A stretch of DNA of 64,000 nt, taken from positions 199,710 to 263,709 of IMG/VR virus record IMGVR_UViG_3300027736_001324; one strand, given 5' to 3'. Of this stretch, positions 11,512-27,562 are shown in pieces. The position numbers and the translations under genes are program-made. The notes below the pieces were generated by a model. That model saw only the letters and a list, made by a program, of their open reading frames with translations, searched no databases and was not told the DNA's origin. Numbering within the stretch: position 1 is the first letter of the stretch; each line of letters starts with the position of its first letter.

Positions 11512-14213
11512 GTTACGTGGATGCGGTTCATTCTAGGGATGACGATAGAATTTTTGTAGTTGAACGAGACCAGAACGGAAAGCGTCAATACAAAGAATAT
11601 CCCACAAACTATGTACTCTACTATCCCGATCATAAGGGAAAGTATCGCAGTATATACGGTGACCCTGTAAATCGTTTCAGTACACGCAAACGACAAGAGT
11701 TTGAAAAAGAACGCAGAATTCATTCAGGTAAGAAATTATTTGAAAGCGATGTGCCAGTAGTGTTTCGCTGCCTTAGTGAAAACTATCTTAAGGCAGACGT
11801 TCCTAAACTACATACATGCTTCTTTGACATTGAGGTAGACTTTGATCCTGAGAAGGGTTTCAGTCCTACAACTGATCCATTCAATCCAGTTACTGCTATC
11901 TCATTGTATTTAGATTGGCAAGATACATTGGTTACATTGGTCATTGCTCCCAAGCATATGTCACCAGAGACAGCACAGGAAATATGTAATGAGTTTAATA
12001 ATTGTATGCTTTTCACTAATGAAAAGGATATGTTTGATGTTTTCTTTCAACTCATTGAAGATGCTGATGTAATGACTGGCTGGAATTCTGAAGGATACGA
12101 CATACCTTACATGGTTAATCGTGTCACAAGAGTAATGAGTAAGGATGACACACGCAAGTTTTGCTTGATGGGTCAACTTCCTAAGCCAAGAGAGTACGAA
12201 AGATTTGGCAAAAGTGAAACTACATACGACTTAGTAGGTCGTATTCACATGGACTATTTGCAACTCTACAAGAAATACAACTATGAATCACGACATTCAT
12301 ATAAGTTAGATGCTATTGGTGAGATGGAAGTAGGTGAGAACAAAACTCAATATGAAGGTACACTTGATCAGTTGTATAACAAAGACTTTAAAAAGTTTAT
12401 TGAATACAATAGACAAGATACCGTGCTGTTAGTGAAGATCCACAACAAACTCAAATTCTTAGAACTTGCTAATCAATTGGCGCATGAGAACACAGTACTG
12501 CTTCCAACAGTAATGGGTTCTGTAGCAATGATTGAAATGGCAATTTTTAATGAAGCCCACGAACGTGGATTAGTAGTGCCAGACAAAAAAAGAAGGAATG
12601 AAAATGCAGAAGAAACAACGCCAGCAGCAGGTGCCTTCGTTGCTACGCCGAAAAGAGGTATGCACGAATACGTCGGAGCAGTTGACATTAACTCGCTCTA
12701 TCCCTCGGTTATTCGTAGCCTCAACATGGCAGGAGAAACCATTATTGGTCAAGTCCGTCAGACATTAACTGACAAATATATGCTTGACAAAGGCAAGCAA
12801 CTTGCTAGCCTTAAGAAGCGTTTCAAAGAAGGCGACGATGACGTTACTGGTGCTATTCTATGGGAAAACTTGTTTGGTGTATTAGAATACACATCAATTA
12901 TGAATCAAGAACGTGGCACAATTCTTACTATAGATTACGAAGATGGTCGTAGTGAGGAATATAGTGCCGCTGAAATATGGAAGATGATCTTTGATAGCAA
13001 TCGCCCATGGATGCTCTCTGCTAATGGTACTATCTTTACTTACGAAAAAGAGGGCGTAGTTCCAGGACTATTGTCTCGCTGGTACTCAGATCGTAAAGTA
13101 ATGCAGAAGAAACTTAAAGAATCTACTACTGATGAAGATAGAGACTACTGGGATAAGCGTCAACTTGTTCGTAAGATTTTGTTGAACTCGGCGTATGGCG
13201 CACTATTGAACGAACATTGTAGATTCTATGACAAACGTATCGGTCAAAGTGTTACACTAAGTGGTCGTCAGATTGTTAAACATATGATGAGTACCATCAA
13301 TGAAACAGTTACTGGTGATTATAACCATGAAGGCCCTGCAATTGTGTATGGTGATACTGACTCCTGTTACTTTACCGCGTATCCCATTCTCAATTCGCAA
13401 ATAGCAAACGGTGATATTAAATGGGATAAAGAAAACTGTATCACATTGTATGATGGTATTGCTGACCAAGCAAACGAATCATTCCCTGCATTCATGGAAA
13501 AAGCATTTCATGCTCCAAGAAAGAATGGCGCAATCATTAAAGCTGGTCGTGAATTGATCGGTGATCGTGCTATCTTTATCACAAAGAAACGCTATGCTAT
13601 CAATATCTTTGATAAAGAGGGTAAGCGTAAAGATACAAACGGTAAAAACGGTGATATCAAAGCAATGGGTCTTGACTTGAAACGTGCTGATACTCCTAAA
13701 TACATTCAAGAATTCTTAATGGATGTACTTACTAAGGTCCTCGCTGGTGAGCAACGTGATAAAGTTATTGAAATGGTTAAAGAATTCAAAACTAAACTAT
13801 CTGAACAAGATAGTTGGACAAAGGGTAGCCCAAAGAGTGTTAATAACTTAACTAAGCACACTATTGAATTTGAAAAGACTGGTAAGTGTGGTGTGGGTCA
13901 TGCAAGAGCAGCAATTAACTGGAACTATCTACGCAGAGTATACGGTGACAACTATAGCCAAAAGATTATAGATGGCATGAAGATTGTGGTGTGTAAACTC
14001 AAAGATAACGCATTGGGTTTCACTAGTATTGCATATCCAGTAGATGAATTGAGATTGCCAACATGGTTCAAAGAATTACCATTTGATGATTTACTAATGG
14101 AATCAACATTGGTGGATGAAAAGATTGACAACTTACTTGGTGTATTAGATTGGGATATCAGAAGCAATACAGATGTTAACTCAATGTTTGATGAACTATT
14201 CACATTCGGTTAA
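11508..14213 (+). CDS. Family B DNA polymerase (T4 gp43-like)
   Basis: Exo FFDIEVD; DINSLYPS; KILLNSAYG; YGDTDS; KKRY; C-terminal SMFDELFTFG clamp motif. TTG start; no intein apparent. Confidence 0.97.
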   Translation: MSYVDAVHSRDDDRIFVVERDQNGKRQYKEYPTNYVLYYPDHKGKYRSIYGDPVNRFSTRKRQEFEKERRIHSGKKLFESDVPVVFRCLSENYLKADVPKLHTCFFDIEVDFDPEKGFSPTTDPFNPVTAISLYLDWQDTLVTLVIAPKHMSPETAQEICNEFNNCMLFTNEKDMFDVFFQLIEDADVMTGWNSEGYDIPYMVNRVTRVMSKDDTRKFCLMGQLPKPREYERFGKSETTYDLVGRIHMDYLQLYKKYNYESRHSYKLDAIGEMEVGENKTQYEGTLDQLYNKDFKKFIEYNRQDTVLLVKIHNKLKFLELANQLAHENTVLLPTVMGSVAMIEMAIFNEAHERGLVVPDKKRRNENAEETTPAAGAFVATPKRGMHEYVGAVDINSLYPSVIRSLNMAGETIIGQVRQTLTDKYMLDKGKQLASLKKRFKEGDDDVTGAILWENLFGVLEYTSIMNQERGTILTIDYEDGRSEEYSAAEIWKMIFDSNRPWMLSANGTIFTYEKEGVVPGLLSRWYSDRKVMQKKLKESTTDEDRDYWDKRQLVRKILLNSAYGALLNEHCRFYDKRIGQSVTLSGRQIVKHMMSTINETVTGDYNHEGPAIVYGDTDSCYFTAYPILNSQIANGDIKWDKENCITLYDGIADQANESFPAFMEKAFHAPRKNGAIIKAGRELIGDRAIFITKKRYAINIFDKEGKRKDTNGKNGDIKAMGLDLKRADTPKYIQEFLMDVLTKVLAGEQRDKVIEMVKEFKTKLSEQDSWTKGSPKSVNNLTKHTIEFEKTGKCGVGHARAAINWNYLRRVYGDNYSQKIIDGMKIVVCKLKDNALGFTSIAYPVDELRLPTWFKELPFDDLLMESTLVDEKIDNLLGVLDWDIRSNTDVNSMFDELFTFG

Positions 14214-14220
14214 ACTGGTG

Positions 14221-14249
14221 TTGACTATCGCAATATATTCCATTATAAT
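14221..14249 (+). promoter_or_regulatory. Sigma70-type promoter
   Basis: TTGACT-17 bp-TATAAT upstream of the AAGGAA RBS of 14292. Confidence 0.75.
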
Positions 14250-14291: not shown

Positions 14292-15023
14292 ATGAAAGAT
14301 TATTTAAAAGACTTAATTGACCATACTCTTGGTCTTGGCACTATTGAACTTATTAAGGTCACTGGTACAGATACTGTAACTGCAATCAATGCAGTAGCAG
14401 AAAACAAAAGTGTTATCATTAGTGGTACATTCAAAGACCCGATCGCCGACTTCATTGGTGTATTCGGTATGCCTAACTTGAACAAACTCAAAACAATTAT
14501 TGGGTTTGATGAATATGATGAAACATCTAAAATCAATGTTGTTCGTACTCAACGTGATGGTGTAGATGTGCCGTCTACTATTCACTTTGAAACAAAGACT
14601 GGAGACTTTATTAACGATTATCGTCTTATGCTTAAAAGCGTAGTTGATGAAAAAGTTAAGAGTGTATCATTCAAGGGTGCTAAGTGGAATGTTGAATTTG
14701 AGCCTACAGTTGCTGGTATTCAACGGCTTAAGAAGCAAGCACAAGCAAACAGTGAAGAAGAACATTTTGTGTTCAAAACTGATGGTAGTGATTTGAAAGT
14801 ATTCTTTGGTGATGCGTCAACACACAGTGGTAACTTTGTATTCAACACTCCAGTAACTGGCACACTAGCTGGTACACACAAGTGGCCTGTTAAAGAATTC
14901 TTGAGTATCATGGATCTAGTTGGTGACAAGACAGTAAAGATTAGTGAACAAGGTGCGACTGAAATCACAGTTAATAGTGGTATCGCAACTTATGTTTACT
15001 TATTGCCAGCTAATAAGAAATGA
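14292..15023 (+). CDS. Probable DNA polymerase sliding clamp (gp45/PCNA-like)
   Basis: 243 aa two-domain beta-rich pattern (FGMPNLNKLKTII...), immediately after the polymerase. Confidence 0.7.
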   Translation: MKDYLKDLIDHTLGLGTIELIKVTGTDTVTAINAVAENKSVIISGTFKDPIADFIGVFGMPNLNKLKTIIGFDEYDETSKINVVRTQRDGVDVPSTIHFETKTGDFINDYRLMLKSVVDEKVKSVSFKGAKWNVEFEPTVAGIQRLKKQAQANSEEEHFVFKTDGSDLKVFFGDASTHSGNFVFNTPVTGTLAGTHKWPVKEFLSIMDLVGDKTVKISEQGATEITVNSGIATYVYLLPANKK

Positions 15024-15397
15024 TCAAGAACATTTCTAGTTCCGGTAAGTACATAAATGTAATTGGTGAATCTGTTGCCAATTACATTAATAATTATTCA
15101 GGGGCGCAAGGTGTCGGCAATATAAGATTCAATACAGTTAATCAAAGTATGGAAGTGTATGACGGTAATGGTTGGATACTACTTCAGATGGGACACGTTA
15201 ATGTAGGGCTAAATGCTGAAGCAGAATCAATACTTGATTGGGCTAAAAAGAAGCGTGATGAAGAAATAGAAATTGATTTATTAGCTGCGGCCAATCCCAC
15301 TGTCAAAAATTTACTTGAGCAAATAAAAGAAAAAGAAGACCAAATACAAATGGTCATGACCTTGATTAAGAAAGAAGTTTCAATTGAAACAAGATAA
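15020..15397 (+). CDS. Hypothetical protein
   Basis: 125 aa ORF overlapping both neighbours; coiled-coil C-terminus. Confidence 0.7.
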   Translation: MIKNISSSGKYINVIGESVANYINNYSGAQGVGNIRFNTVNQSMEVYDGNGWILLQMGHVNVGLNAEAESILDWAKKKRDEEIEIDLLAAANPTVKNLLEQIKEKEDQIQMVMTLIKKEVSIETR

Positions 15398-16925
15398 TCT
15401 ATCACAAAAACATAACCCAGACTGGGCATTATTTTTACCCGCAGTAAGTAGTTTTTATATTGCTGGCTTGGGTAAACAACGCAAGGGTGAACAGTACTTT
15501 GATGCTGCACGTATCCCTGTAAGTTTCAATGGTGATGTTGAGAAACTAAACTTTCTTAATAGCAAAGAAGGTCTTTACTATTACAAGTGGGGATTGTACA
15601 GTGCTGGTCATGCTAACTTAGATACTACAGTTGATGATCCAAGTGAATCTATCATACGTGAACGTGAAGAAGGTACATTCATGTTGGGTGATAGTGGTGG
15701 ATTTCAGATTTTAAAAGGTCAATGGCCCGCAGACTGGAAAGATCCTAACTGTCCACGTGCCATGGTAAAGCGTAAAGCAGTATTGAAGTGGATGGACACA
15801 TACATGGACTATGGTATGTGCTTAGATATTCCTTCTCAATCATTAACTACGTTTGGCATGAAAGATAAGAATGGTAATAGCCTGCATGGTATCAGTACTA
15901 TTGAAGAAGCAATATCTGCCACACATATTAATAACGAATACTTTATAAATAATCGCTCAGGGAAATGTAAGTTTTTAAATGTGTTGCAAGGTCGCAATCA
16001 TACTCAAAGTGATGATTGGTATGAGGAGATGAAGAAGTACTGTGATCCAAACATCTATCCAGACAATCATTTTAATGGTTGGGCATTTGGTGGTCAGAAC
16101 AAGATTGACATTCATTTGACCTTGCGTAGATTGGTTGGTATTATCCATGATGGATTACTACAAGAAGGCAAGCACGACTTGATTCATTGTTTGGGTACAA
16201 GTATATTGGAGTATGCTGTATTGTTTACTGATATTCAAAAAGCTATACGTAAGTATCACAATCCAAATCTACAAATTACATTTGATTGTGCTAGTCCATT
16301 CTTTAGTGCTGCTAAGGGTCTTGCTTATTTCAATACAACTATTGAGCATAACAAGAAATGGTCTTATCAAATGGAAAAGACTGCTGAAAAGAAAAGTTAT
16401 GCTAATGATATGCGTAAATATCGTGATGCTGTATTGGCTGATGGTGTACATAAATCATTTACTGATAGTCCGGTAACTGATGCATTAGTAATGAAAGATA
16501 TGTGTTATCGTGGTGTGGGCTTCTTAGGACAGCACGGTAAAGAAACTAAAACAAGCTGGGATACACTAAGCTACACATTGATTCAAAGTCATAATGTTTG
16601 GATGCACATGAATGCGGTACAAGAGGCTAATCGTCAATATGAAACAGGTGTAGTTCCAAAGATGTTGGTGCATAAGTTTGAAGGTGATAACTTCTTTGGC
16701 AATATTATTGATGAAATCTTTTCTAAAAAAACAAAGCAAGAGTCATTAGAGTTGATTGATTATCATAGTAGTTATTGGAAACAATTCCAATCAGGTAGTC
16801 AGGGTATTAGCGGTAAGAAAACGGTTAATGCTATGAGTATGTTTGAAGAATTGTTTACAGTAGATGAAGAACCAATTGAGGAAATAGAAGATAGCGATGA
16901 AGCTATGTCATTAGTTTTGGAGTAA
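15384..16925 (+). CDS. dpdA: DpdA-like 7-deazaguanine DNA transglycosylase (TGT fold)
   Basis: LGDSGGFQ TGT motif, CLDIP, GWAFGG, IHCLG; co-located with folE/queD/queE; no CxCxxC Zn site seen. Confidence 0.85.
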   Translation: MKQDNLSQKHNPDWALFLPAVSSFYIAGLGKQRKGEQYFDAARIPVSFNGDVEKLNFLNSKEGLYYYKWGLYSAGHANLDTTVDDPSESIIREREEGTFMLGDSGGFQILKGQWPADWKDPNCPRAMVKRKAVLKWMDTYMDYGMCLDIPSQSLTTFGMKDKNGNSLHGISTIEEAISATHINNEYFINNRSGKCKFLNVLQGRNHTQSDDWYEEMKKYCDPNIYPDNHFNGWAFGGQNKIDIHLTLRRLVGIIHDGLLQEGKHDLIHCLGTSILEYAVLFTDIQKAIRKYHNPNLQITFDCASPFFSAAKGLAYFNTTIEHNKKWSYQMEKTAEKKSYANDMRKYRDAVLADGVHKSFTDSPVTDALVMKDMCYRGVGFLGQHGKETKTSWDTLSYTLIQSHNVWMHMNAVQEANRQYETGVVPKMLVHKFEGDNFFGNIIDEIFSKKTKQESLELIDYHSSYWKQFQSGSQGISGKKTVNAMSMFEELFTVDEEPIEEIEDSDEAMSLVLE

Positions 16926-16929: not shown

Positions 16930-17139
16930 ATGTATAAACAACGAATTGCTAAACTACAACAGAGGGCCATAGACCTTGATAAAGAAATCTTGAAGGCAGA
17001 AAAGGATACTAACTTTAACAAAGACGCCCTTAAAGCTATGCTGATAGACAGAAATGATGTATACTCTGAGATAAGAAGATATACAAAACTTCAATGGGAT
17101 GAAGACCACGAAAGTGTTAATTTTGAGGATGATAGATAA
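16930..17139 (+). CDS. Hypothetical coiled-coil protein
   Basis: 69 aa ORF in operon. Confidence 0.7.
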   Translation: MYKQRIAKLQQRAIDLDKEILKAEKDTNFNKDALKAMLIDRNDVYSEIRRYTKLQWDEDHESVNFEDDR

Positions 17140-17591
17140 TGGAACAACAAGAACAAGCTGATATGGAAAAGCGTCAACGCATTAAAGATAAAGCATTTCG
17201 TACAATCTTTGTACGATTTCAAAAAGAAGGTATTCATAAATACCCCGCAGCAGCAACAGACCCGTCACTTGCTACAGGTGATGAGTATGATGTTAGCTTT
17301 TTAGCAACTCCACATCGTCACATATTTCATTTTGAAGTGACAATTGAAGTATTTCACAACGACCGTGATATTGAGTTTATTCAATTCAAACGATGGTTAG
17401 AGAATCAATATTCTCAAGGAATCTTAGCATTGGATTACAAAAGTTGTGAAATGATTAGCGATGACCTTTATGAAGTTATTGCAACTCGGTATCCAAATCG
17501 TAATATCAAAATCAAAGTCTCTGAAGATGATGAGAATGGTGCTACGATTTCTTATAACAGAACTCAACCTTATCGTAACCTCGCTATTTAA
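17139..17591 (+). CDS. dpdL: DpdL-like QueD paralogue (T-fold; proposed CDG decarboxylase family)
   Basis: LATPHRHIF matches the LxxxHRHxF signature as I recall it; EGIH, SCEMI, VSEDDENG. Confidence 0.78.
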   Translation: MEQQEQADMEKRQRIKDKAFRTIFVRFQKEGIHKYPAAATDPSLATGDEYDVSFLATPHRHIFHFEVTIEVFHNDRDIEFIQFKRWLENQYSQGILALDYKSCEMISDDLYEVIATRYPNRNIKIKVSEDDENGATISYNRTQPYRNLAI

Positions 17592-17603: not shown

Positions 17604-17810
17604 ATGGCAAAACAAACTTTTCAATCAAACCCACGTGTTACTCAAATCTTTGAGGACCTAGAAAAATATCTAGAATTCTGCGTGGATTACGGTTATAAAT
17701 ACAATGAAGCAGAACTCTATGATCAACGGAGTTATGTATATCGTCAGTATAGTAAATTTGCTACAGGCAAATTTGCTAAAGATCAATGGCAGGAAAACGC
17801 TCGTCCATAA
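17604..17810 (+). CDS. Hypothetical protein
   Basis: 68 aa ORF with AAGGA RBS. Confidence 0.7.
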   Translation: MAKQTFQSNPRVTQIFEDLEKYLEFCVDYGYKYNEAELYDQRSYVYRQYSKFATGKFAKDQWQENARP

Positions 17811-17814
17811 TGTT

Positions 17815-18393
17815 ATGATTAACCACCCCGTTAATAATTCTGACTTATCAGTTTATGAATATGATTTGCTACCGGAGTTTGACTTCACTAAGTTGGCTAG
17901 TTATATAAACGAATACAAAGAACAATATCCTAAAAATTATTATACTGATGGATATTGGGACGGGGGTAATTGGTGGCATTCAGACTATATTGTACATTAT
18001 CAAACTGATAAATTTAACGACTTAATAGCAAATATAGAAGAAAAGGCAACATCTATAATGCCCTCACAGAATATAAATGTTAGTTTGGAAGTGAAAGAGT
18101 CATGGATAATTGATTATAAAAGATTAAGTTTTCACAAAGAACATGATCACAGTCCAATTGGATTTAGTGCAGTATGTTATATAGATACAGTTTATGCATC
18201 TGATATTTGGTTTAACAAAACTAAAATAACACCTGAAACCGGGAAGTTAATAATATTTCCCGGCTCACTAAAACACAAAGTTAGCCCAATGACAAATTCA
18301 AATGGACATAGATTGATAATGGCTTTTAATTTATTTCCGAAAATAAACTATGACAAGCTAAACAAATATATAGATGATATAAAAAATGCGTAA
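17815..18393 (+). CDS. 2OG-Fe(II) oxygenase family protein
   Basis: HKEHDH, FSAVCYI, PETGKLIIFPGSLKHKV, RLIMAFN; start placed at ATG 17815 after the upstream stop. Confidence 0.8.
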   Translation: MINHPVNNSDLSVYEYDLLPEFDFTKLASYINEYKEQYPKNYYTDGYWDGGNWWHSDYIVHYQTDKFNDLIANIEEKATSIMPSQNINVSLEVKESWIIDYKRLSFHKEHDHSPIGFSAVCYIDTVYASDIWFNKTKITPETGKLIIFPGSLKHKVSPMTNSNGHRLIMAFNLFPKINYDKLNKYIDDIKNA

Positions 18394-20491: not shown

Positions 20492-20493
20492 TC

Positions 20494-20709: not shown

Positions 20710-20737
20710 ATGTAAGCAGCACAACGGTTGCTTACAT
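20710..20737 (+). promoter_or_regulatory. Stem-loop in the folE leader
   Basis: atgtaagcagc-acaacg-gttgcttacat, 11-bp stem (one G-U), just after TAAATAAATA. Confidence 0.6.
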
Positions 20738-20772
20738 TTCAAAACACAAACCATCACAAAGGAAGGTTATCT

Positions 20773-21453
20773 ATGAGTTATAATAAAACAAAAACAGATC
20801 CAGAGTTGGGTCAAAAAGTACACGAACATTTGATTAAGATGGGAGTTGAAACTCCAATCAAAGACGGAGGTCAAATTGTTGATCGTAAAGGCAAAGTACA
20901 AGTTATTGAAACTTTATTTGCTGACATTATGGTAGCGTTGGGTCTTGACTTAACTGATGACAGTCTTATGGACACCCCAAAGCGTGTAGCAAAGATGTAT
21001 GTCAACGAAATCTTTTGGGGTCTTGATTATGAAGCATTCCCTAAATGTACCGCAGTTGATAACAAAATGAAGTACAACGAAATGGTATGCGAACGCAATA
21101 TCAATGTACAAAGTAACTGTGAACATCACTTTGTCGTCATTGACGGTCTTGCTACTGTAGCATATGTTCCCAATCAAAAGGTGCTTGGATTGAGTAAAAT
21201 CAATCGTATCGTAGAATATTTTAGCAAGCGTCCACAAATTCAAGAACGATTGACTGAACAAATCTTTCACGCATTGCAATATATTCTGGAAACAGAAGAT
21301 GTTGCGGTTATGATTGACGCTAAACATTACTGTGTAGCCGCACGTGGCGTAGAAGATACTGGTAGTAGTACTGTCACTAGTAAGTTGGGCGGAGGATTTA
21401 AATCTGACCCGGCAGCAAGAGCAGAATTCTATCAACTGGCTAGGAAACAATAA
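20773..21453 (+). CDS. folE: GTP cyclohydrolase I
   Basis: DTPKRVAKMY, SNCEHH, GLSKINRIV..FSKRPQIQERLT, HYCVAARGV; start set at ATG 20773 behind GGAAGG. Confidence 0.96.
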   Translation: MSYNKTKTDPELGQKVHEHLIKMGVETPIKDGGQIVDRKGKVQVIETLFADIMVALGLDLTDDSLMDTPKRVAKMYVNEIFWGLDYEAFPKCTAVDNKMKYNEMVCERNINVQSNCEHHFVVIDGLATVAYVPNQKVLGLSKINRIVEYFSKRPQIQERLTEQIFHALQYILETEDVAVMIDAKHYCVAARGVEDTGSSTVTSKLGGGFKSDPAARAEFYQLARKQ

Positions 21454-21620: not shown

Positions 21621-21856
21621 TGGGATTTCATAAACCAATGGACTATAACAGTGTACATCATCAAATTTATATGGCCGGAGTAGAATTACATTCTAGTCAT
21701 AATGACGGATTCACTACTTGGGAAATCAAAAAAGATTTACATCGTATCAAGTGGTTGTTAGATGAAATCATGGCTGATGCTCCGACCTTTGCAGGAGAAG
21801 AAGAATTCTTAGATGAACATTCTAAAGTAAAGATGTGGAGAACATTGAAAAAATGA
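21620..21856 (+). CDS. Hypothetical protein
   Basis: 78 aa translationally coupled ORF. Confidence 0.7.
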   Translation: MGFHKPMDYNSVHHQIYMAGVELHSSHNDGFTTWEIKKDLHRIKWLLDEIMADAPTFAGEEEFLDEHSKVKMWRTLKK

Positions 21857-22317
21857 TATTCAATAGAATTAAAGAATTAAAACTACAAGGCTTAAAGATA
21901 GGTATTGTATTCTCACAATTTGATATTCTACACGCAGGACATATCGCAATGCTTAGTGAAGCCAAGAATCATTGTGATTACCTAATTGCTGGATTACAAA
22001 ACAATGCACAATGGGATAGACCAGATAAGAATGCACCCATTCAAAGTATTGTTGAAAGACAAATCAGTTTAAGTGCTGTCCGTTTCGTAGATGAAATTGT
22101 TGTTTACAATACTGAAAAAGATTTGGAAGACATACTGTTGACATTGCCTGTAGATGTGCGTATACTAGGGGTTGAGTACATGGAGAAAGACTTTACCGGA
22201 CGAGCAATCTGTGAGAAGCGTAAGATTGAATTAGTATTCAATAGTCGTGACCATAGTTTCAGCAGTAGCAGTTTGCGTAAGAGAGTAGCAGAAGCGGAAC
22301 AAAATAAGGTGAAATAA
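21853..22317 (+). CDS. Cytidylyltransferase-like (TagD/glycerol-3-phosphate CTase family)
   Basis: FDILHAGH (HxGH), VDEIVVY, SSSSLRKR. Confidence 0.88.
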   Translation: MIFNRIKELKLQGLKIGIVFSQFDILHAGHIAMLSEAKNHCDYLIAGLQNNAQWDRPDKNAPIQSIVERQISLSAVRFVDEIVVYNTEKDLEDILLTLPVDVRILGVEYMEKDFTGRAICEKRKIELVFNSRDHSFSSSSLRKRVAEAEQNKVK

Positions 22318-22628
22318 TGGACAGAGAAGAAGATCAGTTTACTAGAAATTTTGATGTTAAAAGAATTTCAAGAAGTTATTCTAATGCCCGTTCTCATTAC
22401 GACTCATTTAATACTTATGGTCACAAATCTTATACTTATTATAGCCATGATGATGAAATGCTAGATGTTGAAATGTCTAGACGAGGCTGGGATGAACTTA
22501 TGCGCTATTATAGAATGAATGAAAAATGTTCAGCACTAGAAACTTACGAACACGTTATGCGAGAAAAACATCCTGCTATTAAAGATGCATATGAAAAATA
22601 TCAAATGTTAATGGAGTTATACAGATGA
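22317..22628 (+). CDS. Hypothetical protein
   Basis: 103 aa coupled ORF. Confidence 0.65.
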   Translation: MDREEDQFTRNFDVKRISRSYSNARSHYDSFNTYGHKSYTYYSHDDEMLDVEMSRRGWDELMRYYRMNEKCSALETYEHVMREKHPAIKDAYEKYQMLMELYR

Positions 22629-23482
22629 CAAAGAAAATACTTATTATGGGCTTGCCTGGCGCAGGCAAAACATTCTTAGCTACGGCATTGAAGAAATACA
22701 TTGAAGAAAATTCAGGTATTCATCATTTTCCAATGGATCGTGCTGTTAATATGGAATATGTTCCACATAACTATAAATGTAGTGTAGATTGGTTCAATGC
22801 CGACGAAATTCGTAAACGATTTAATGATTGGGACTTTAGCCGTGAAGGTCGTATTCGTCAATCATTGCGTATGGCTGAGTTTGCATTAAAATGTACTAGT
22901 GACTTTGTTATATGTGACTTTGTTGCACCATTAGTTGAGATGCGTAATAACTTCAAAGCTGATTGGACTATCTGGGTCGATACTATTGACCAAGGTCGCT
23001 TTGATGACACAAACAAAGCATTTATTCCACCAGATGTATATGATTTCCGTGTGACTGAACAAAATGCTGACAAGTGGGCAGAGTTTATTGGTCAACATAT
23101 ACTAGACAATCGGCGTAGACCAGTCTTTGATTGGAAGAAAGAAACGGTACAGATGTTAGGTCGTTGGCAACCATGGCATGCTGGTCATCGTGCATTGTTT
23201 GAAAGATTGATAGCAAAAACTGGGCAAGTTGTTATTCAAGTACGTGATGTACAAGGATGGCAAGGAAGTAATCCTTTTGCGATTGAACAAGTTAAGGGGT
23301 TTATTCGTAAAGATTTGGATCCAATCTATCAAGGCCAATATGAGATACAAGTTGTACCCAATATTGTCCATATCGGATGGGGTCGTGGAGTAGGTTATAC
23401 ATCGGGTGAAGAAACATTTGATGAAAGTATTACTCAAATTAGTGCTACTAATATCCGAAAAGAAATGAATTTAGGTAAATAG
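22625..23482 (+). CDS. Fusion of APS-kinase-like P-loop domain and HIGH-family nucleotidyltransferase
   Basis: GLPGAGKT; NADEIR..DWDFSREGR.RQ; C-terminal GRWQPWHAGH and ISATNIR. Confidence 0.8.
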   Translation: MTKKILIMGLPGAGKTFLATALKKYIEENSGIHHFPMDRAVNMEYVPHNYKCSVDWFNADEIRKRFNDWDFSREGRIRQSLRMAEFALKCTSDFVICDFVAPLVEMRNNFKADWTIWVDTIDQGRFDDTNKAFIPPDVYDFRVTEQNADKWAEFIGQHILDNRRRPVFDWKKETVQMLGRWQPWHAGHRALFERLIAKTGQVVIQVRDVQGWQGSNPFAIEQVKGFIRKDLDPIYQGQYEIQVVPNIVHIGWGRGVGYTSGEETFDESITQISATNIRKEMNLGK

Positions 23483-23483
23483 A

Positions 23484-23558
23484 TATAACCGGTCTCTTAT
23501 GGGCTCATCCCGGTATACAAATTCTGCGTCCTATGCTATAATAACATAGGAGAACATC
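23484..23558 (+). promoter_or_regulatory. Structured queD leader with RBS-sequestering hairpin
   Basis: Stem accgg(23488-92)/ccggt(23510-14); stem cctatg(23530-35)/catagg(23545-50) covers the AGGAGA RBS; loop contains TATAAT. Confidence 0.55.
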
Positions 23559-24032
23559 ATGGCAAAATATATTTCAACAAAGACTTACAAGCAGATAGGT
23601 CCAGTAGCTTATCGTCAATGGCGTGCAGATAGTCATTGCAATCTAATACATGGCTACGCACTTTCATTTCATTTTGAATTTGAAGCTGATACATTAGATG
23701 CCCGTAATTGGGTAACAGACTTTGGTGGACTAAAGCCTCTAAAATCTGTATTAGAAGATTGGTTTGATCATACATTACTAGTCGCACAAGATGACCCAAT
23801 GCGTGAACATTTACTTGAGTTGGGTAGACTTAAGCTAGCAAAGATTACAGAAGTTGAAAAGACTGGCTGTGAGGGTATTGCTGATTTCTTATACGAATAC
23901 ATTAACACTATTCTATTGCCTAGCTTTGGTGCTAGTGAAGCAGAACGTGTTTGGTGTAGCAAAGTAGAAGTAAGAGAAACAGATGCTAACATGGCAATGC
24001 GTGTTGGGCATAGAGAAGATAGGGAGTTTTAA
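23559..24032 (+). CDS. queD: 6-carboxy-tetrahydropterin synthase (QueD/PTPS)
   Basis: RQW..DSHCNLIHGY, DFGGLK, FDHTLL, GCEG, VEVRET. Confidence 0.88.
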   Translation: MAKYISTKTYKQIGPVAYRQWRADSHCNLIHGYALSFHFEFEADTLDARNWVTDFGGLKPLKSVLEDWFDHTLLVAQDDPMREHLLELGRLKLAKITEVEKTGCEGIADFLYEYINTILLPSFGASEAERVWCSKVEVRETDANMAMRVGHREDREF

Positions 24033-24036
24033 TAAT

Positions 24037-24810
24037 ATGTCTATTAATAACATGAAATCGCCAATTAATTATTTCCCACTTAAAGTGGGAAACACTGAAT
24101 TAAAAAAAATTAGAAATACGTTTAGTCTACATGATATTAATCAAAAATGGATGGGATATAATCTAGAAAATAAAGAAAATAAAGAAAATGATTGGCAGGC
24201 ACATTGGCAGGCACGTGAATTTTTTATAGAATTAGAATTGGCGTACGGCAAATGTGTTACTAGTGGACTGGGATTAGGAGTAATACAAACTTTATTAGCG
24301 GAGAAAGATAACGTTACTGAAGTAATTGTATATGAAAAAAATCCAGATGTTATTGAAATGTTTAAAATTTTAGCCGAGAAATCAAATATTGATACTTCTA
24401 AAATCGTAATAATAAATGAAGATGCGAATAATATAAAAAATATTACATGTGATTGTTTATTTTTGGATCATTTTGAATATGAACCCTTTAGTGAAATAGA
24501 AGAAACAGTTAAAAGAATAGCTTCTCAAAATACAATCAATATAGTATGGTTTTGGCCTGCATGGCGTGTGTTTTCACTATATTGTATAGATACGAATAAA
24601 GAGATAAATGAAAATTCTTTTTTAGAATGGACATCAACTTTAAACATATCTAAATTTCCAAACCAGATACCATCTCACTTGTTTGATAATTTAATTGAAT
24701 TTATTAATCCTATTTGGGATAACTTAAACGCACCAAACAAACATAAAATTGAAGCAAATAAACAGAAGAATGAGTTAATTAATTTTTTTAAAAAACGCAA
24801 TACAAATTAA
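24037..24810 (+). CDS. Class I SAM-dependent methyltransferase-like (spermidine-synthase-like motif)
   Basis: TSGLGLGVI motif I, VYEKN.DVI, INEDA, LFLDHF; very AT-rich. Confidence 0.65.
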   Translation: MSINNMKSPINYFPLKVGNTELKKIRNTFSLHDINQKWMGYNLENKENKENDWQAHWQAREFFIELELAYGKCVTSGLGLGVIQTLLAEKDNVTEVIVYEKNPDVIEMFKILAEKSNIDTSKIVIINEDANNIKNITCDCLFLDHFEYEPFSEIEETVKRIASQNTINIVWFWPAWRVFSLYCIDTNKEINENSFLEWTSTLNISKFPNQIPSHLFDNLIEFINPIWDNLNAPNKHKIEANKQKNELINFFKKRNTN

Positions 24811-24825
24811 TTAAGGAACATATTA

Positions 24826-25674
24826 ATGGCAAAATTAAAAGTCGCAGAATTATTCTATAGCATTCAAGGTGAAGGTCGCTATATGGGCGTCCCTTCTGTC
24901 TTTCTACGCACATTTGGATGTAACTTCAAATGTGCAGGGTTTGGTATGCCTAAGGGCGAACTAAGCAAAGAAGTAGAAGATATCGCTAGTCGCATACATT
25001 ACTATACTGATTATAAACAACTACCATTGGTCAGTACAGGCTGTGATAGTTATGCTAGTTGGGACCCAAGATTCAAAGACTTAAGTCCGATGCTTGAAAC
25101 AGATAGTATTGTTGATAGCATTATGGATATGCTACCACACAATCGTTGGTTGAGTGAACATCTTGTTATCACAGGCGGCGAACCATTATTAGGTTGGCAA
25201 CGTAGTTATGTTGATTTGCTTTCACATGAAAACATGCGCGGATTACAAGAATTAACTTTTGAAACTAACGGAACACAAGAATTGCAACAAGACTTAAAAA
25301 TCTTTTTACATAAATGGTGTATCAGTCGTAGCATGGGTGCAATAACATTTAGCGTCAGTCCTAAACTAAGTATCAGCGGAGAGAAGTGGGAAGAAGCAAT
25401 AAGACCTGAAGTTGTATATGAATATACTCAAGTGGGTCATGTATATCTTAAATTTGTTGTAGCAAACAAACAAGACGTAGAAGAAGCACAAGAAGCGGTT
25501 AATGAATACAGTAAGCGTGGCTTTAGAGGTCATGTATATTTGATGCCTTGCGGCGGTGTTGAAAGTTTATATAATATGAATGCTAGAACAGTTGCTAATG
25601 AAGCAATGCGTTTAGGCTGGCGTTATAGTGATAGACTTCAGGTACCTCTTTTCAAGAACGCATGGAATACTTGA
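24826..25674 (+). CDS. queE: 7-carboxy-7-deazaguanine synthase (radical SAM)
   Basis: ELFYSIQGEG, VFLRTFGCNFKC..GCDS, ITGGEPLL, FETNGT, SVSPKL. Confidence 0.93.
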   Translation: MAKLKVAELFYSIQGEGRYMGVPSVFLRTFGCNFKCAGFGMPKGELSKEVEDIASRIHYYTDYKQLPLVSTGCDSYASWDPRFKDLSPMLETDSIVDSIMDMLPHNRWLSEHLVITGGEPLLGWQRSYVDLLSHENMRGLQELTFETNGTQELQQDLKIFLHKWCISRSMGAITFSVSPKLSISGEKWEEAIRPEVVYEYTQVGHVYLKFVVANKQDVEEAQEAVNEYSKRGFRGHVYLMPCGGVESLYNMNARTVANEAMRLGWRYSDRLQVPLFKNAWNT

Positions 25675-25768
25675 TGAATTTCTTTTGGGGATTCTTACTT
25701 GGATATATAGTAGGTGTATTATACATGTGCTATCGTTCCAATATAGATGCTAGAGTGGATAGAGAATA

Positions 25769-26026
25769 ATGCCCTCAAGTGATTGGACTACACAATCAGC
25801 CGATGCTTATCATTTTAAAAGATGTGTTATGGGTAGAAAATTAAAGTTTACCCTATTGCCTAGACGATGCTATGTAACAAAGCGTATAATGTGGTTAGAG
25901 AGTGCATATTGTATTACCGCAGGATACAGAGCACGAGCACATTTTGGTGATAGCATTTATGTTTATGAACATCGTTGGTATGATAAAGATGAATATTTAA
26001 TAGCAAGATTAAGGGATTTAGTATGA
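25769..26026 (+). CDS. Hypothetical protein
   Basis: 85 aa coupled ORF; a 31-aa hydrophobic ORF lies at 25674-25769. Confidence 0.6.
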   Translation: MPSSDWTTQSADAYHFKRCVMGRKLKFTLLPRRCYVTKRIMWLESAYCITAGYRARAHFGDSIYVYEHRWYDKDEYLIARLRDLV

Positions 26027-26217
26027 GATTTGAAATGCGTTGGCTTATTACAGCAGGATGGGATGGGCCTGAGAAGATATTACAATATCGTTATCAAACA
26101 GAAATAACAGACTATGCTTCACAGAATCCTAGAACAGGTGGATTTCTTAAACGGGCAGGATTTACCGAATGGGTTACTGTTCCTTCAGTAGATGAGGTAT
26201 GGAATGCGGACATATAA
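26023..26217 (+). CDS. Hypothetical protein
   Basis: 64 aa coupled ORF. Confidence 0.6.
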   Translation: MRFEMRWLITAGWDGPEKILQYRYQTEITDYASQNPRTGGFLKRAGFTEWVTVPSVDEVWNADI

Positions 26218-27562
26218 CAAAAGAATAGGCTTTCTAATTGCCGATCAGCACTTTATCCCGCATGGTGGCATAGGTCAATTCGCTAAAGGCTTTACTGAAA
26301 TGTGTCAACGTATCAACTGGAAAGTTGATATTATACTAGACAAACAACCAACAAATGAATTTAGCGACTATGTAAAATCGTTAGGTGCTAACATTGTCTA
26401 TCCATCTAATCCATTACGCTATTCATCACATACAGCTACATTCGCATTTAGTGATAGCATTAACTTTGAGAAGATGGTTAACTTTAGAGAAAGTATACTA
26501 CAGGCTTTTCAAACAAATATCTATGATATGTTAGTATGTAATACACAGGAAGCAATGAGTGCTGCTTATGCCATGGGTATAGGCAAGTATATCCCAGTAG
26601 TATTCTATACACATTCATACAGCATGGTCTTCCGTGATGAACAAGATTTTAGTGACGTATGTATAGATGAGTATCATAACTTTTTTAATAAGCATATGGA
26701 ACTATCACATAGTTTTGTAGGAACTCAAAGTCAAAAGAACGTTGATGAGATGACCAAGTATGGAGCAAAGAATGTTTCATTGTTGCGTATGCCATTAAGT
26801 GAACGTGGATTACTGGACCCTAGTATTGGTCCTCGCAAGGGTGTATTGTTTATTGGACGATGGGAAGAACGCAAGAACCCGTCTGCCTATATCAAAATAA
26901 TGAAAGAAACACAACTACCCTGTAAAGTAATGACTAATAGTAATGGTGCTAAGAAGTTTGAGAAAGCATTTAGTGAAGCTGGTATTACTGATTACGAAAT
27001 TAAAATTGCTATCGTTGGACAAGAGAAAGTAGATTTCATTAAGAGTTGTAAAGTATTCTTTATGCCAGCATTGGGTGAGAACTATCCATTTGCTTTTAGT
27101 GAATGTTTGGGGCATATGCCATGTGTTGTTTTAGATAATCAAGAATGGTCTGATAACTTTGATAGTAAGTATTTCTATAAAGAGAAACTAGCCAATGCTG
27201 GAAATCTAATTAAATTATTATACAATGTTGACAACTACTATGATACCGGCGCATTAGATTATATCAAGCAATTAGATAATGATACTGCACAAGGTTGGAT
27301 ACAATTCTTAGATAACTTTGTAGCAAAGCGTAGCAATACTAATGCCGCAAAGATTAACAACTATGATACAGTATGCTATAGAGATTATATTAAAGAATTA
27401 GATCGTGGGCATTTGGCTCGGGAAGATTTTGAAAGTGTATTGGCTAATCGTCATAAGTTTATCATTAATACATACACAGATGATAATAGCTATTTAAGTA
27501 AAGACCCGGTTTATAAACCAATTGAAGAGGAAACAGGCGAGAGTCTGTTTGAATTTGTATGA
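26204..27562 (+). CDS. GT4-like (GT-B) glycosyltransferase with C-terminal SLFEF motif
   Basis: PHGGIG, LFIGRWEERKNP, ENYPFAFSECLG. Confidence 0.85.
   Translation: MRTYNKRIGFLIADQHFIPHGGIGQFAKGFTEMCQRINWKVDIILDKQPTNEFSDYVKSLGANIVYPSNPLRYSSHTATFAFSDSINFEKMVNFRESILQAFQTNIYDMLVCNTQEAMSAAYAMGIGKYIPVVFYTHSYSMVFRDEQDFSDVCIDEYHNFFNKHMELSHSFVGTQSQKNVDEMTKYGAKNVSLLRMPLSERGLLDPSIGPRKGVLFIGRWEERKNPSAYIKIMKETQLPCKVMTNSNGAKKFEKAFSEAGITDYEIKIAIVGQEKVDFIKSCKVFFMPALGENYPFAFSECLGHMPCVVLDNQEWSDNFDSKYFYKEKLANAGNLIKLLYNVDNYYDTGALDYIKQLDNDTAQGWIQFLDNFVAKRSNTNAAKINNYDTVCYRDYIKELDRGHLAREDFESVLANRHKFIINTYTDDNSYLSKDPVYKPIEEETGESLFEFV

Follow-up and report, generated by a model that had tools for sequence, protein, structure and literature searches.

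Does a peptide shared with the polymerase bring the DNA-modifying enzymes of a phage to its sliding clamp? The question is raised by a 64-kb stretch of DNA (the window) belonging to a freshwater jumbo phage of 264 kb (IMG/VR UViG 3300027736_001324), in which a replication module (family-B DNA polymerase and PCNA-type clamp) is located directly upstream of a 7-deazaguanine DNA-modification module containing a TGT/DpdA-like base-exchange enzyme, FolE, QueD, QueE, two glycosyltransferases (GT1 and GT2) and sugar-nucleotide enzymes. A preliminary description, made from the sequence alone, reported closely similar peptides in the polymerase, the DpdA-like protein and GT2, and inferred that modification is tethered to the clamp. 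The coordinates of all three motifs held when every position was checked by translation.

The replication and modification modules

The genes are found in the order polymerase, clamp, a 125-aa ORF and the DpdA-like gene (15384–16925, 513 aa), and the features of the locus are as follows:

11508..14213, + strand: family-B DNA polymerase, 901 aa (Pfam DNA_pol_B, 2e-40; DNA_pol_B_exo1, 1e-23)
14181..14210, + strand: polymerase C-terminal tail SMFDELFTFG, stop codon directly after (translation)
14292..15023, + strand: PCNA-type sliding clamp by predicted fold, 243 aa (AlphaFold2 pLDDT 83.8, pTM 0.83)
15020..15397, + strand: ORF of unknown function, 125 aa, between the clamp and DpdA-like genes (PHROG matches weak)
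15384..16799, + strand: TGT/DpdA-like transglycosylase catalytic core, residues 1–472 (AlphaFold2 pLDDT 90.6)
16800..16925, + strand: disordered C-terminal tail, residues 473–513 and stop (pLDDT <50 at 473–513)
16836..16859, + strand: SMFEELFT, polymerase-like putative docking motif in the DpdA tail, residues 485–492, 21 residues upstream of the stop
16884..16922, + strand: second conserved tail element IEDSDEAMSLVLE, acidic and amphipathic, kept in close relatives
17139..17591, + strand: protein of unknown function in the conserved module, 150 aa (phrog_17812, 1.6e-32)
17704..18393, + strand: 2OG-Fe(II) oxygenase-like protein (Pfam 2OG-FeII_Oxy_5, 8e-10; phrog_81)
18386..19573, + strand: GT1, glycosyltransferase-like, without the tail motif (Pfam Glyco_trans_1_2, weak)
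20728..21453, + strand: GTP cyclohydrolase I, FolE (Pfam, 7.7e-62)
21835..22317, + strand: cytidylyl/adenylyl-transferase-like protein (Pfam CTP_transf_like, 6e-10; NCBIfam rfaE_dom_II, 3e-17, under cut-off)
22625..23482, + strand: kinase and nucleotidyltransferase-like protein (phrog_10255 'kinase', 1.8e-40; NMN-adenylyltransferase matches weak)
23559..24032, + strand: QueD/6-pyruvoyl-tetrahydropterin synthase family (Pfam PTPS, 2.8e-15)
24826..25674, + strand: QueE-like radical-SAM enzyme (47% identity to the annotated QueE of BUCT-ZZ01; Pfam Radical_SAM match weak)
26192..27562, + strand: GT2, GT4-type GT-B glycosyltransferase, 456 aa (Pfam Glycos_transf_1 under cut-off, E-value 0.003)
27542..27559, + strand: SLFEFV, polymerase-like putative docking motif, the last six residues of GT2 (tail ESLFEFV-stop)
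27559..28380, + strand: UDP-glucose 4-epimerase-like protein, GalE family (Pfam Epimerase, 4e-28; NCBIfam galE, 1e-47, under equivalog cut-off)

A Pfam search with the product of 14292–15023 gave no match. Its predicted structure has a PCNA-type fold: the top Foldseek matches in the PDB are yeast, human and archaeal PCNA (E-value, 3e-11; TM-score, 0.64–0.72), and its ESM Atlas neighbors are gp45/PCNA clusters. The lack of a clamp fold had been named in the preliminary description as a refuting outcome, and the model shows such a fold. Clamp homologues adjoin the polymerase in PA5oct, Vibrio phage 2.275.O, L093, L094, L096 and L098, and in at least six lineages the clamp gene adjoins the DpdA-like gene; the latter adjacency is not universal, since about 7 kb separate the two genes in the L083–L091 clade. 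An ORF of 80–89 aa occupies the place equivalent to that of the 125-aa ORF in L093, L096 and PA5oct, with homology between them not established.

None of the Pfam, NCBIfam and PHROG models searched detects the DpdA-like protein, and tblastn found none of the named DpdA1–4 phages, the search giving a weak match to a Vibrio phage GR7B protein with the annotation 'TGT domain'. Its core has only four significant PDB matches, to bacterial TGT and archaeosine TGT (E-values from 1e-6 to 1e-5), while D103, S104 and G106 (of DSGGFQ), D148, H268, G271 and D301 are invariant across 55 diverse relatives. The family constitutes a large separate branch of 844 clusters at 50% identity. The earlier identification as DpdA therefore held in the sense of a remote enzyme of TGT fold (as predicted by the model) with DSGGFQ, the gene of which lies among FolE, QueD and QueE.

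The 150-aa protein and GT1 are 38% and 62.5% identical, respectively, to gene products of the 7-deazaguanine cluster of Synechococcus phage BUCT-ZZ01, and weaker GT1 relatives are located directly 3' of the DpdA-like gene in PA5oct, L085, L086, L090 and L091. The cytidylyl/adenylyl-transferase-like protein probably has a role in sugar activation. GT2 has GT4 enzymes as structural neighbors in the ESM Atlas over residues ~5–375, followed by a C-terminal extension of ~80 aa, and PF00534/PF13692 are present in many of its homologues.

Conservation of the tails and their match to the polymerase

It could be argued that the peptides share no function, as acidic Phe/Leu C-termini arise easily and may drift with genome composition. 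Within the window, SMF[DE]ELFT occurs exactly twice in six frames, at the polymerase and DpdA sites, and the shorter F[DE]ELF has no further occurrence. The codons used at the two sites differ (Ser TCA/AGT, Leu CTA/TTG, Phe TTC/TTT), so that the identity exists at the protein level; recent DNA duplication or conversion is ruled out by the same differences. Chance as the source of this pair is excluded, and the shared peptide noted in the preliminary description is real. Among the 103 ORFs of the window, such a tail is found in the polymerase, the DpdA-like protein and GT2 only, besides one spurious ORF of 41 aa.

The position of the DpdA motif, described earlier as near the C-terminus, needs correction, since a 21-residue acidic tail comes after it. 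In the AlphaFold2 model, the disordered tail has short helices at residues 487–490 and 504–512, and the motif is predicted as a one-turn helix resembling PIP-type peptides. The second tail element (IEDSD...VLxE) was absent from the preliminary description; distant relatives have D[DE]xLxxLE-like segments at its position (e.g., P0121, P0126, P0128, P0141, P0143 and P0262).

The motif persists in about 200 close relatives, and F487, L490 and F491 show almost no variation among 121 close DpdA-like proteins. The polymerase tail is kept as S[TM]F[DN][DE]LF[TSV]FG-stop in 81 relatives. Among distant relatives (113 full-length representatives of 50%-identity clusters, 30–50% identical), the strict motif is present within the last 60 residues in 33, compared to 3.9 ± 1.9 for shuffled tails and 0–4 for internal windows. 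Two family members without the motif have no clamp homologue in their context, and one of them adjoins an integrase.

By itself, the LFxF tail of GT2 is not significant within the window, a point in favor of chance: the 20,240 residues contain 14 matches to LFx[hydrophobic], with an expectation of about 0.6 terminal matches per 100 proteins. The tail becomes significant because it is conserved. All 120 of 120 GT2 relatives (70–96% identity) end in xLF[EDSQ][GFW]x-stop, preceded by an acidic linker that varies, as do the linkers of DpdA-like proteins around their conserved F/L/F. In BUCT-ZZ01, the terminal LF switches to the cyanophage form: the GT2 homologue (43% identical) ends SLEDFFND-stop and the polymerase of the same phage STLDDFFS-stop.

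The form of the DpdA tail likewise changes along with that of the polymerase from the same genome. The tails of nine lineages, which include a second, DpdA2-type subfamily from T4-like phages, are as follows (polymerase / DpdA):

Window: SMFDELFTFG-stop / SMFEELFTV
PA5oct: HFDSLFGW-stop / SFNSLFDV
Vibrio phage 2.275.O: NNTDLFDW-stop / NNNDLFGW-stop
L083: TFDTLFSFE-stop / TFDSLFNFE
L093: LSTFFEF-stop / LSLFEF-stop
L094: AMKLFNY-stop / AKSLFEF-stop
L096: KFESLFD-stop / TFDGLFDIE
BUCT-ZZ01: STLDDFFS-stop / ASLDSFFD-stop
Stenotrophomonas phage Ps15: SSLEDLFGW-stop / NSLDDLFG-stop

The polymerases of related loci are 41–57% identical to that of the window. Pairing within genomes scored 224, permuted pairings 142.6 ± 18.2, and only 1.4e-5 of permutations reached 224; the lineages are not strictly independent. 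The DpdA motif thus behaves like a short linear motif, being conserved, enriched in tails and matched to its own polymerase. These data speak against the second refuting outcome foreseen, a motif not conserved in relatives.

In the 69 kb of BUCT-ZZ01 that were examined, all five occurrences of L[DE]xFF fall among the 40 C-terminal residues of a protein. These proteins are gp43, gp55, the enzyme of DpdA2 type, the homologue of GT2 and a baseplate protein. The last instance, which might be cited in support of the absence of shared function, is probably due to chance. Given the two occurrences of the 8-mer with different codons, the enrichment in tails, the constancy of LF in GT2 and the matching within genomes, the reading without shared function is all but excluded.

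Putative recruitment by the sliding clamp

T4 gp43 and gp55 are established clamp binders, and their sequences were verified to end KASLDFLFG-stop and SLDFLYEAND-stop, respectively. By analogy with T4/RB69, and in the absence of experiments in this lineage, SMFDELFTFG is likely a clamp-docking peptide. Our main reading (probability about 0.7, without binding data) is that the phage clamp recruits the DpdA-like enzyme and GT2 on replicating DNA. Each of their flexible, acidic C-terminal tails bears the polymerase-like peptide, x-F-x-x-L-F or L-F-x-F, and in this scheme the peptide would occupy the hydrophobic pocket of the clamp, as inferred from homology with T4/RB69 gp43. Docking sites may be offered by clamps that sit on replicating phage DNA, either when remaining behind the fork or through unoccupied subunits of the trimer. 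Newly synthesized phage DNA would then undergo guanine exchange, followed by sugar transfer, with local concentration and density both high, and host DNA, which bears no phage clamp, would be spared. As this pairing is found again in many unrelated phages, a link between DNA modification and the replication fork is probable. The tethering proposed in the preliminary description is therefore supported overall, with clamp binding and processivity still inferred; its claim that GT2 acts on DNA was not shown. Also inferred only are a gain in density by tethering and the identity of the inserted base, and targeting to newly replicated phage DNA without processivity is not distinguished from processive tethering.

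An alternative is that the peptide docks a partner shared by the three proteins but distinct from the phage clamp, such as the host beta clamp (DnaN), phage single-strand-binding protein, helicase or a replication-compartment scaffold; polymerase, DpdA and GT2 would still be co-localized. In favor of this, the motif resembles the bacterial beta-clamp consensus QL[SD]LF (e.g., L093, NLSLFEF-stop; P0182, SGLFKF-stop; Phosso, IVEGLF-stop), so the host clamp remains a possible partner; the neighbors of Phosso include a DnaE-like fragment, the second acidic element of the DpdA tail suggests an additional partner, and binding data are absent. Against it, each examined lineage that has the motif encodes a PCNA-type clamp of its own, mostly adjoining the polymerase, and the homologous T4 tails bind gp45. 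In addition, the late sigma factor gp55 shares the motif type of gp43 in ZZ01 and KVP40, which ties the motif class to clamp clients. Another partner is therefore considered unlikely.

Alternatively, the tails may bind the clamp for a regulatory or competitive role, i.e., polymerase displacement, timing of the switch from replication to the late phase, or keeping the enzymes inactive until DNA synthesis starts. The T4 clamp is a mobile enhancer of late transcription via gp55 and gp33, and the acidic segment following the DpdA motif might, speculatively, act as an auto-inhibitory DNA mimic. In T4, the alpha-glucosylation share is set by promoter strength and the interaction of alpha-glucosyltransferase with gp45 is not its main determinant (PMC13216743), so clamp binding need not have a large effect. 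On the other hand, DNA-modifying enzymes specifically bear the motif (two unrelated DpdA subfamilies), as does a glycosyltransferase. Clamp-type tails are present on the DpdA2-type proteins of ZZ01, Ps15 and BUDD, and only the KVP40-type DpdA2 tails mismatch the polymerase: those of KVP40, VH7D and nt-1 (TAE[FY]P[AD]FK...) are unlike KVP40 gp43 (TLESFFG-stop) and gp55 (LNLQKFYD-stop), and phages with DpdA2 of VH7D and nt-1 type have <0.1% of G modified (PMC10516641). Although the link between the missing motif and trace modification rests on two measured phages only (VH7D and nt-1), recruitment to substrate fits better than regulation of the replisome, which is regarded as unlikely.

Comparison with known systems

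In eukaryotes, DNA behind the fork is modified or repaired by PCNA clients such as DNMT1 and UNG2. Similarly to the arrangement proposed here, these enzymes are linked to the clamp, and so to newly replicated DNA, through a PIP-type peptide located in a disordered segment, but the clamp lineage, consensus (Qxx[LIM]xx[FY][FY]) and chemistry differ, making this an analogy without evolutionary link.

With bDpdA and DpdA1–4 (Hutinet 2019; Cui 2023, PMC10516641), the window protein shares the TGT-superfamily fold, a DSGGFQ-type catalytic motif, a gene position among FolE/QueD/QueE and a presumed post-replicative exchange of guanine for 7-deazaguanine, whereas Pfam TGT and DpdA models miss it. PA5oct is described as having a deazaguanine 'synthesis/incorporation system' (Iyer et al. 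2021, PMC7824862), and its DNA resists enzymes whose sites contain G (PMC12191111). A clamp-binding tail is not mentioned in Hutinet 2019, PMC10516641 or PMC7824862, and the characterized DpdA2 of VH7D and nt-1 lack one, unlike the DpdA2-type proteins named above. No paper linking DpdA to a clamp was found in the literature searched, consistent with the statement of the preliminary description that this had not been described.

The tails of T4/RB69 gp43, gp55 and gp33 are likewise short hydrophobic peptides located at the C-terminus or close to it, within a flexible segment often with acidic flanks, and common to several different proteins of one phage. Those clients serve replication and late transcription, whereas the putative additional clients here are DNA-modification enzymes, and the form is F-x-x-L-F/L-F-x-F instead of L-D-F-L-F.

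The direct precedent, missed in the preliminary description, is T4 alpha-glucosyltransferase, which was reportedly found to bind gp45 by Sommer et al. 2004 and co-purifies with this clamp (PMC13216743, 2026). The principle of clamp-tethered DNA modification is thus already known, while its application to DpdA appears new. In both cases a phage glycosyltransferase that acts on DNA (for GT2, by inference only) is associated, here putatively, with the phage's own clamp and proposed to act during replication; the T4 substrate, 5-hydroxymethylcytosine, is made before replication. To our knowledge, no clamp motif has been mapped in the T4 enzyme, and its tail (…KEQFDIITK-stop) has no obvious gp43-like peptide. 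In contrast, the putative clients in the window include a base-exchange enzyme, and the peptide presumed to dock them plainly copies the polymerase tail.

Docking-type peptides in the polymerase, the DpdA-like protein and GT2

Among the 103 ORFs of the window, a docking-type tail, i.e., a hydrophobic C-terminal peptide resembling that of the polymerase, was found only in the polymerase itself, the DpdA-like protein and the second glycosyltransferase (GT2), apart from a spurious 41-aa ORF. The genes concerned are listed below; all of the genes used in the analysis are intact ORFs.

11508–14213, family-B DNA polymerase, 901 aa
14292–15023, PCNA-type clamp subunit, assigned by fold and context, 243 aa
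15384–16925, DpdA-like protein with a TGT fold, 513 aa
17139–17591, 150-aa protein (p150)
18386–19573, first glycosyltransferase (GT1)
26192–27562, second glycosyltransferase (GT2), 456 aa

The preliminary description had placed clamp-binding peptides in the polymerase, the DpdA-like protein and GT2, and all three positions held on translation. The polymerase ends in SMFDELFTFG and GT2 in ESLFEFV, while the DpdA-like protein carries SMFEELFT at residues 485–492, with 21 residues remaining before the stop codon. In a six-frame translation of the whole window, SMF[DE]ELFT was found at two sites only, the polymerase and DpdA-like tails, and the same two sites were the only ones for the 5-mer F[DE]ELF. 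The GT2 tail by itself would lack significance within the window. The Ser, Leu and Phe codons differ between the polymerase and DpdA-like copies; therefore, the likeness is kept at the protein level and does not reflect a recent DNA duplication. Recent gene conversion between the two tails was rejected on the same grounds.

In the AlphaFold2 model of the DpdA-like protein, the fold stops at residue 472 and residues 473–513 have pLDDT values below 50; the helices modelled in this tail are one turn inside the motif (487–490) and a second one at 504–512. The F, L and F of the motif are nearly invariant in about 200 close relatives (80 IMG/VR loci and 120 protein clusters), with variable flanks. 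In the 30–50%-identical representatives of 50% clusters, the tails differ in length and sequence, yet x-F-[ND]-x-L-F or [SGD]-L-F-[DE]-[FW] is very frequent, either at the extreme C-terminus or ahead of an acidic extension. The strict pattern occurs in 33 of the 113 full-length representatives, compared with 3.9 ± 1.9 in shuffled tails and 0–4 in internal 60-residue windows. The peptide thus behaves as a short linear motif on a segment without stable fold; its binding to the clamp is inferred.

A second conserved element (window 16884–16922) lies C-terminal to the docking motif. Close relatives have it as IEDSD[DE]A..[VL]L.E, whereas in distant ones (P0121, P0126, P0128, P0141, P0143 and P0262) it takes the acidic amphipathic form D[DE]xLxxLE. 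This element, with a helix predicted at 504–512, might bind a second partner or mimic DNA.

Other tails were also observed in the family. The protein relatives P0173, P0181, P0187, P0231 and P0236, together with that of genomic locus L097, form a subgroup without F-x-x-L-F and share the signature W.T.DLE[EP]F instead, which might be a different docking motif; P0181 could derive from a bacterial island. The 538-aa TGT-domain protein of Vibrio phage GR7B (vB_VcorM_GR7B, MT366760.1, 6617–8233) has a long lysine-rich tail (…KRKKPKKVKAKAKDTKK…) without clamp motif, conceivably an alternative means of keeping the enzyme on DNA. The DpdA-like protein of Sinorhizobium phage Phosso (PV764938.1, 469 kb; 5968–7617) ends in IVEGLF, and its gene adjoins those for a primase, a DnaB-like helicase and a DnaE-like fragment; the window clamp has no homologue beside it. 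Since IVEGLF resembles a beta-clamp motif, the tethering logic may apply there with a different clamp.

GT2 appears to consist of a GT-B core of the GT4 type, ~375 residues long, plus an extension of ~80 residues. Its score against Glycos_transf_1 (PF00534) is 17.5 bits, below the 26.4 cut-off; many 70–75%-identical homologues carry precomputed PF00534/PF13692 assignments, and its ESM Atlas neighbours are GT4 enzymes. The motif makes up the final six residues and is preceded by an acidic linker of variable sequence; all relatives (120/120, 70–96% identical) end in xLF[EDSQ][GFW]x after such a linker. In the homologue from Synechococcus phage BUCT-ZZ01 (43% identical), the end has instead become SLEDFFND, as in the polymerase of that phage. 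A clamp tail is most simply explained if GT2 acts on DNA; both this activity and the clamp binding are inferred.

The clamp subunit and the TGT-type enzyme

The AlphaFold2 model of the 14292–15023 product (pLDDT 83.8) has the two-domain subunit topology of PCNA and gp45, with two similar beta-alpha-beta-beta-beta domains. The top 50 Foldseek matches are all PCNAs, including those of yeast, human, archaea and ASFV (E-values down to 3 × 10−11; TM 0.64–0.72), in agreement with the ESM Atlas structural neighbours (PCNA, gp45 and beta clamps). No match was found to the Pfam families DNA_PPF, gp45-slide_C or PCNA_N, a sequence comparison with the PDB gave nothing useful, and the only PHROG match is phrog_12062 of unknown function. 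Because no curated family matches by sequence, the assignment depends on the fold and the genomic context. The gene begins 79 bases past the stop codon of the polymerase, whose tail is a hydrophobic docking-type peptide, and the polymerase-then-clamp arrangement recurs in phage PA5oct, Vibrio phage 2.275.O and the loci L093, L094 and L096. On this basis the protein is a PCNA-type clamp subunit, while a closed trimeric ring and its loading on DNA by an AAA+ clamp loader are inferred. The window proteins scanned included no recognisable clamp loader, the scan not extending to the remainder of the 264-kb genome.

The PA5oct homologue of the clamp (MK797984.1, 4918–5664) is annotated as a structural protein, a label resting on mass spectrometry (ESI-MS/MS). 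A virion-protein reading was thus considered for the 243-aa protein and rejected because of its PCNA fold and its position beside the polymerase. The polymerase gene of PA5oct (1–4837) is interrupted by a Hef-like homing endonuclease, and that of L094 (4955–9154) is likewise in pieces, with an intein-splicing domain.

The AlphaFold2 model of the DpdA-like protein (pLDDT 90.6) contains DSGGFQ and has a TGT-type (beta/alpha)8 barrel. Its only PDB matches at E-values below 1 × 10−3 are bacterial and archaeosine TGTs (1 × 10−6 to 1 × 10−5), with TM values of only 0.35–0.53. D103, S104 and G106 of DSGGFQ, as well as D148, H268, G271 and D301, do not vary among 55 relatives (26–51% identity); D103 and D301 are the putative equivalents of the catalytic aspartates Asp102 and Asp280 of TGT, the second of which serves as nucleophile. 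A tblastn search gave a weak match to the annotated TGT-domain protein of GR7B. Neither PF01702 (TGT) nor PF23859 (DpdA) matched the protein or 27 diverse relatives at E-values up to 0.01, no NCBIfam or PHROG model detects it, and PDB searches by sequence, with the single sequence or a 55-sequence profile, gave nothing useful. Fold, residues and context show that it is a TGT-type enzyme of a separate branch unmodelled in curated libraries; DNA base exchange is inferred. The family is large: clustering at 90% identity gives more than 6,670 clusters, and clustering at 50% gives 844. For one member, P0148, no relative was found in IMG/VR.

The window is part of a 263.7-kb IMG/VR contig (UViG_3300027736_001324), and blastn of the region against GenBank phages returned a 72-base polymerase match only, with no close phage relative. 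PA5oct encodes a 34%-identical homologue of the DpdA-like protein in the same gene order, and has been noted as having a deazaguanine synthesis/incorporation system (Iyer et al., PMC7824862). PA5oct DNA is resistant to restriction enzymes whose sites contain G (PMC12191111), which is only indirect evidence for the inferred exchange of guanine for 7-deazaguanine.

Co-variation with the polymerase tail and the putative clamp partner

In every genome where both genes are readable, the polymerase tail is matched more closely by the DpdA motif of its own genome than by the tails of other genomes.

Table. Polymerase and DpdA-type tails of the same genomes. All polymerase peptides, and the enzyme peptides marked (stop), end at the stop codon; L-handles are genomic loci of relatives.
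Genome; polymerase tail; DpdA tail
Window; SMFDELFTFG; SMFEELFTV
PA5oct; HFDSLFGW; SFNSLFDV
Vibrio phage 2.275.O; NNTDLFDW; NNNDLFGW (stop)
L083; TFDTLFSFE; TFDSLFNFE
L093; LSTFFEF; LSLFEF (stop)
L094; AMKLFNY; AKSLFEF (stop)
L096; KFESLFD; TFDGLFDIE
BUCT-ZZ01 (T4-like); STLDDFFS (gp43); ASLDSFFD (stop; DpdA2-type enzyme)
Stenotrophomonas phage Ps15; SSLEDLFGW; NSLDDLFG (stop)

The enzyme of Xanthomonas phage BUDD ends in QSLEELFG. In BUCT-ZZ01, the 416-aa product of the gene adjoining the GT2 homologue contains HADSGGLQ, can be aligned with the family profile by hhalign (probability, 91%; E-value, 1 × 10−6), and is homologous to the experimentally characterised DpdA2 of phages VH7D and nt-1, which belongs to a different DpdA subfamily from that of the window. 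For the nine lineages, the own-genome pairing score is 224 compared with 142.6 ± 18.2 after permutation, and a score of 224 is reached by a fraction of only 1.4 × 10−5 of all 362,880 permutations. As the lineages are not fully independent, this figure is a guide and not a probability. That the likeness of the peptides is mere coincidence is all but ruled out. CP220 and phiST, whose enzymes are of the DpdA3 family, show 100% replacement; the A3 profile had no match in the first 50 kb of CP220, and a scan of the first 50 kb of PA5oct for motif-bearing proteins returned no F[DN]xLF tails.

Across the same 80 IMG/VR contigs (L003–L082), identity to the window is 58–100% for the clamp and 82–100% for the DpdA-like enzyme, i.e., the clamp diverges faster. 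Fast clamp evolution could conceivably drive the co-variation of the docking peptides.

In T4, the clamp gp45 is bound by the homologous tails of gp43 and gp55; their sequences, KASLDFLFG and SPSLDFLYEAND, respectively, both at the C-terminus, were verified. In BUCT-ZZ01, gp55 has LEKFFDD followed by an acidic tail, and L[DE]xFF occurs five times in the 69 kb examined, always within the last 40 residues of a protein. Four of these proteins are gp43, gp55, the GT2 homologue and the DpdA2-type enzyme; the fifth is a baseplate protein, in which the match is probably fortuitous. Each motif-bearing lineage has its own clamp gene, in most cases directly beside the polymerase. Two family members without the motif, P0181 and P0235, come from short contigs with no clamp homologue; P0181 lies beside an integrase, with no polymerase nearby. 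The DpdA2 tails of KVP40, VH7D and nt-1 (TAEFPAFKEQE and TAEYPDFKS, at the stop codon) are unlike those of KVP40 gp43 (TLESFFG) or gp55 (LNLQKFYD), and in VH7D and nt-1, which have KVP40-type DpdA2, under 0.1% of G is modified (PMC10516641). Mismatched tails together with trace modification fit the clamp hypothesis, but the cases are few.

A different shared partner, including the host clamp DnaN, would also account for a common peptide, and the DnaN motif QL[SD]LF does resemble it. We regard this as unlikely. The DpdA-like tail carries its short hydrophobic peptide near the C-terminus on a disordered segment, and the peptide of the genome's own polymerase is matched by DpdA in nine lineages and by GT2 in the window and BUCT-ZZ01. 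It is likely that the phage clamp is the partner of both tails; this is inferred, without binding data or complex prediction.

Proposed clamp-recruited modification and the 7-deazaguanine module

The genes for FolE, QueD and QueE are found within 9 kb of the DpdA-like gene, which is also surrounded by the two glycosyltransferase genes and by genes for a 2OG-Fe oxygenase, a GalE-like epimerase and proteins resembling nucleotidyltransferases and kinases. QueE is located near the DpdA-like gene in PA5oct, and QueF, a queuosine-synthesis gene and FolE in 2.275.O. No QueC was found in the window; therefore, CDG may be the end product of the pathway, or amidation may proceed by a non-canonical step. 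The PP-loop ATPase (10597–11205) was rejected as QueC, being TilS-N-like (lysidine synthetase domain; NCBIfam, 2 × 10−36). Comparison of window 17139–27562 with the BUCT-ZZ01 cluster (ON615601.1, 59572–78843) revealed shared FolE, QueD, QueE, GT1 (62.5% identity), GT2 (43%) and p150. As it is common to a T4-like cyanophage and a jumbo phage, the module is portable. The BUCT-ZZ01 cluster has a phosphoribosyltransferase-domain gene, as in Ps15, and GT1-like genes directly follow the DpdA-like gene in several lineages. Based on the sharing of GT1 and GT2 with BUCT-ZZ01 and on these GT1-like genes, both glycosyltransferases belong to the 7-deazaguanine module, and the two enzymes together with sugar-nucleotide genes suggest a glycosylated 7-deazaguanine.

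In the mechanism proposed here, clamps on replicating phage DNA would recruit the base-exchange enzyme and GT2, both docking in the clamp pocket that holds the polymerase. Modification would stay close behind the fork, at high density, and would be limited to DNA bearing the phage clamp. As a whole, clamp-recruited modification is the likely best explanation (probability about 0.7); clamp binding, the effect on density and DNA as the GT2 substrate are inferred. The alternative that the tails are clamp-bound in a regulatory role is considered very unlikely. The preliminary description had held that riding the clamp makes both reactions processive; this claim remains undecided between true processivity and plain targeting, tethering itself being inferred. 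In T4, the alpha-glucosyltransferase binds gp45, yet promoter strength outweighed binding for its share of glucosylation (PMC13216743), and the size of a tethering effect is therefore uncertain.

The principle is already known from this T4 enzyme, a clamp client that modifies DNA behind the fork, and by analogy the arrangement mirrors PCNA-DNMT1/UNG2 of eukaryotes. No paper linking DpdA or 7-deazaguanine systems to a clamp was found in the literature searched. The clamp-tail link appears to be new for the DpdA class, while the T4 principle and the presence of the branch in PA5oct are in print. DpdA is presumed to install the 7-deazaguanine modifications of phages post-replication. The density measured varies between phages, from under 0.1% to 100% of G, and the determinant is not known (PMC10516641). 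A clamp-docking tail is a concrete, testable candidate for it and, if real, would also explain how the enzyme distinguishes phage from host DNA, extending the single T4 alpha-glucosyltransferase/gp45 case to a whole enzyme class. As the tail is readable from sequence alone, it could predict heavily modified phage genomes, which would be useful for sequencing, restriction/defence studies and phage choice. Cultured carriers are PA5oct, 2.275.O, Ps15 and BUCT-ZZ01.

A bolder reading, which we judge more likely to fail than to hold when taken jointly, is that clamp tethering is a general unrecognised principle of phage 7-deazaguanine systems. In this reading, the polymerase docking peptide would be copied by DpdAs from two or more subfamilies, as well as by the glycosyltransferases that partner them; the tail would let a post-replicative exchange enzyme reach high or complete guanine replacement on phage DNA only, and tail-less DpdA enzymes would leave trace modification only. 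Since jumbo phage and T4-like cyanophage alike carry the FolE/QueD/QueE/GT1/GT2/p150 module, a 7-deazaguanine decorated with sugar may be the final product; such a base, to our knowledge, has not been described in DNA.

Elsewhere in the window are found a 1075-aa protein that includes a dCMP/cytidine deaminase domain (65–3292), a UvdE UV-endonuclease (32789–33844), a ClpX-like ATPase (55458–56660) and a protein similar to a BUCT-ZZ01 gene product (61194–61829), tentatively taken to be ClpP-like. Three small proteins of unknown function (37689–37925, 37922–38359 and 49171–49389) have almost identical ends, KKHFGVEE, KEQFGVEE and KKHFGV, respectively. These could represent a further common C-terminal motif, or they could merely result from conserved translational-coupling sequence at gene junctions.
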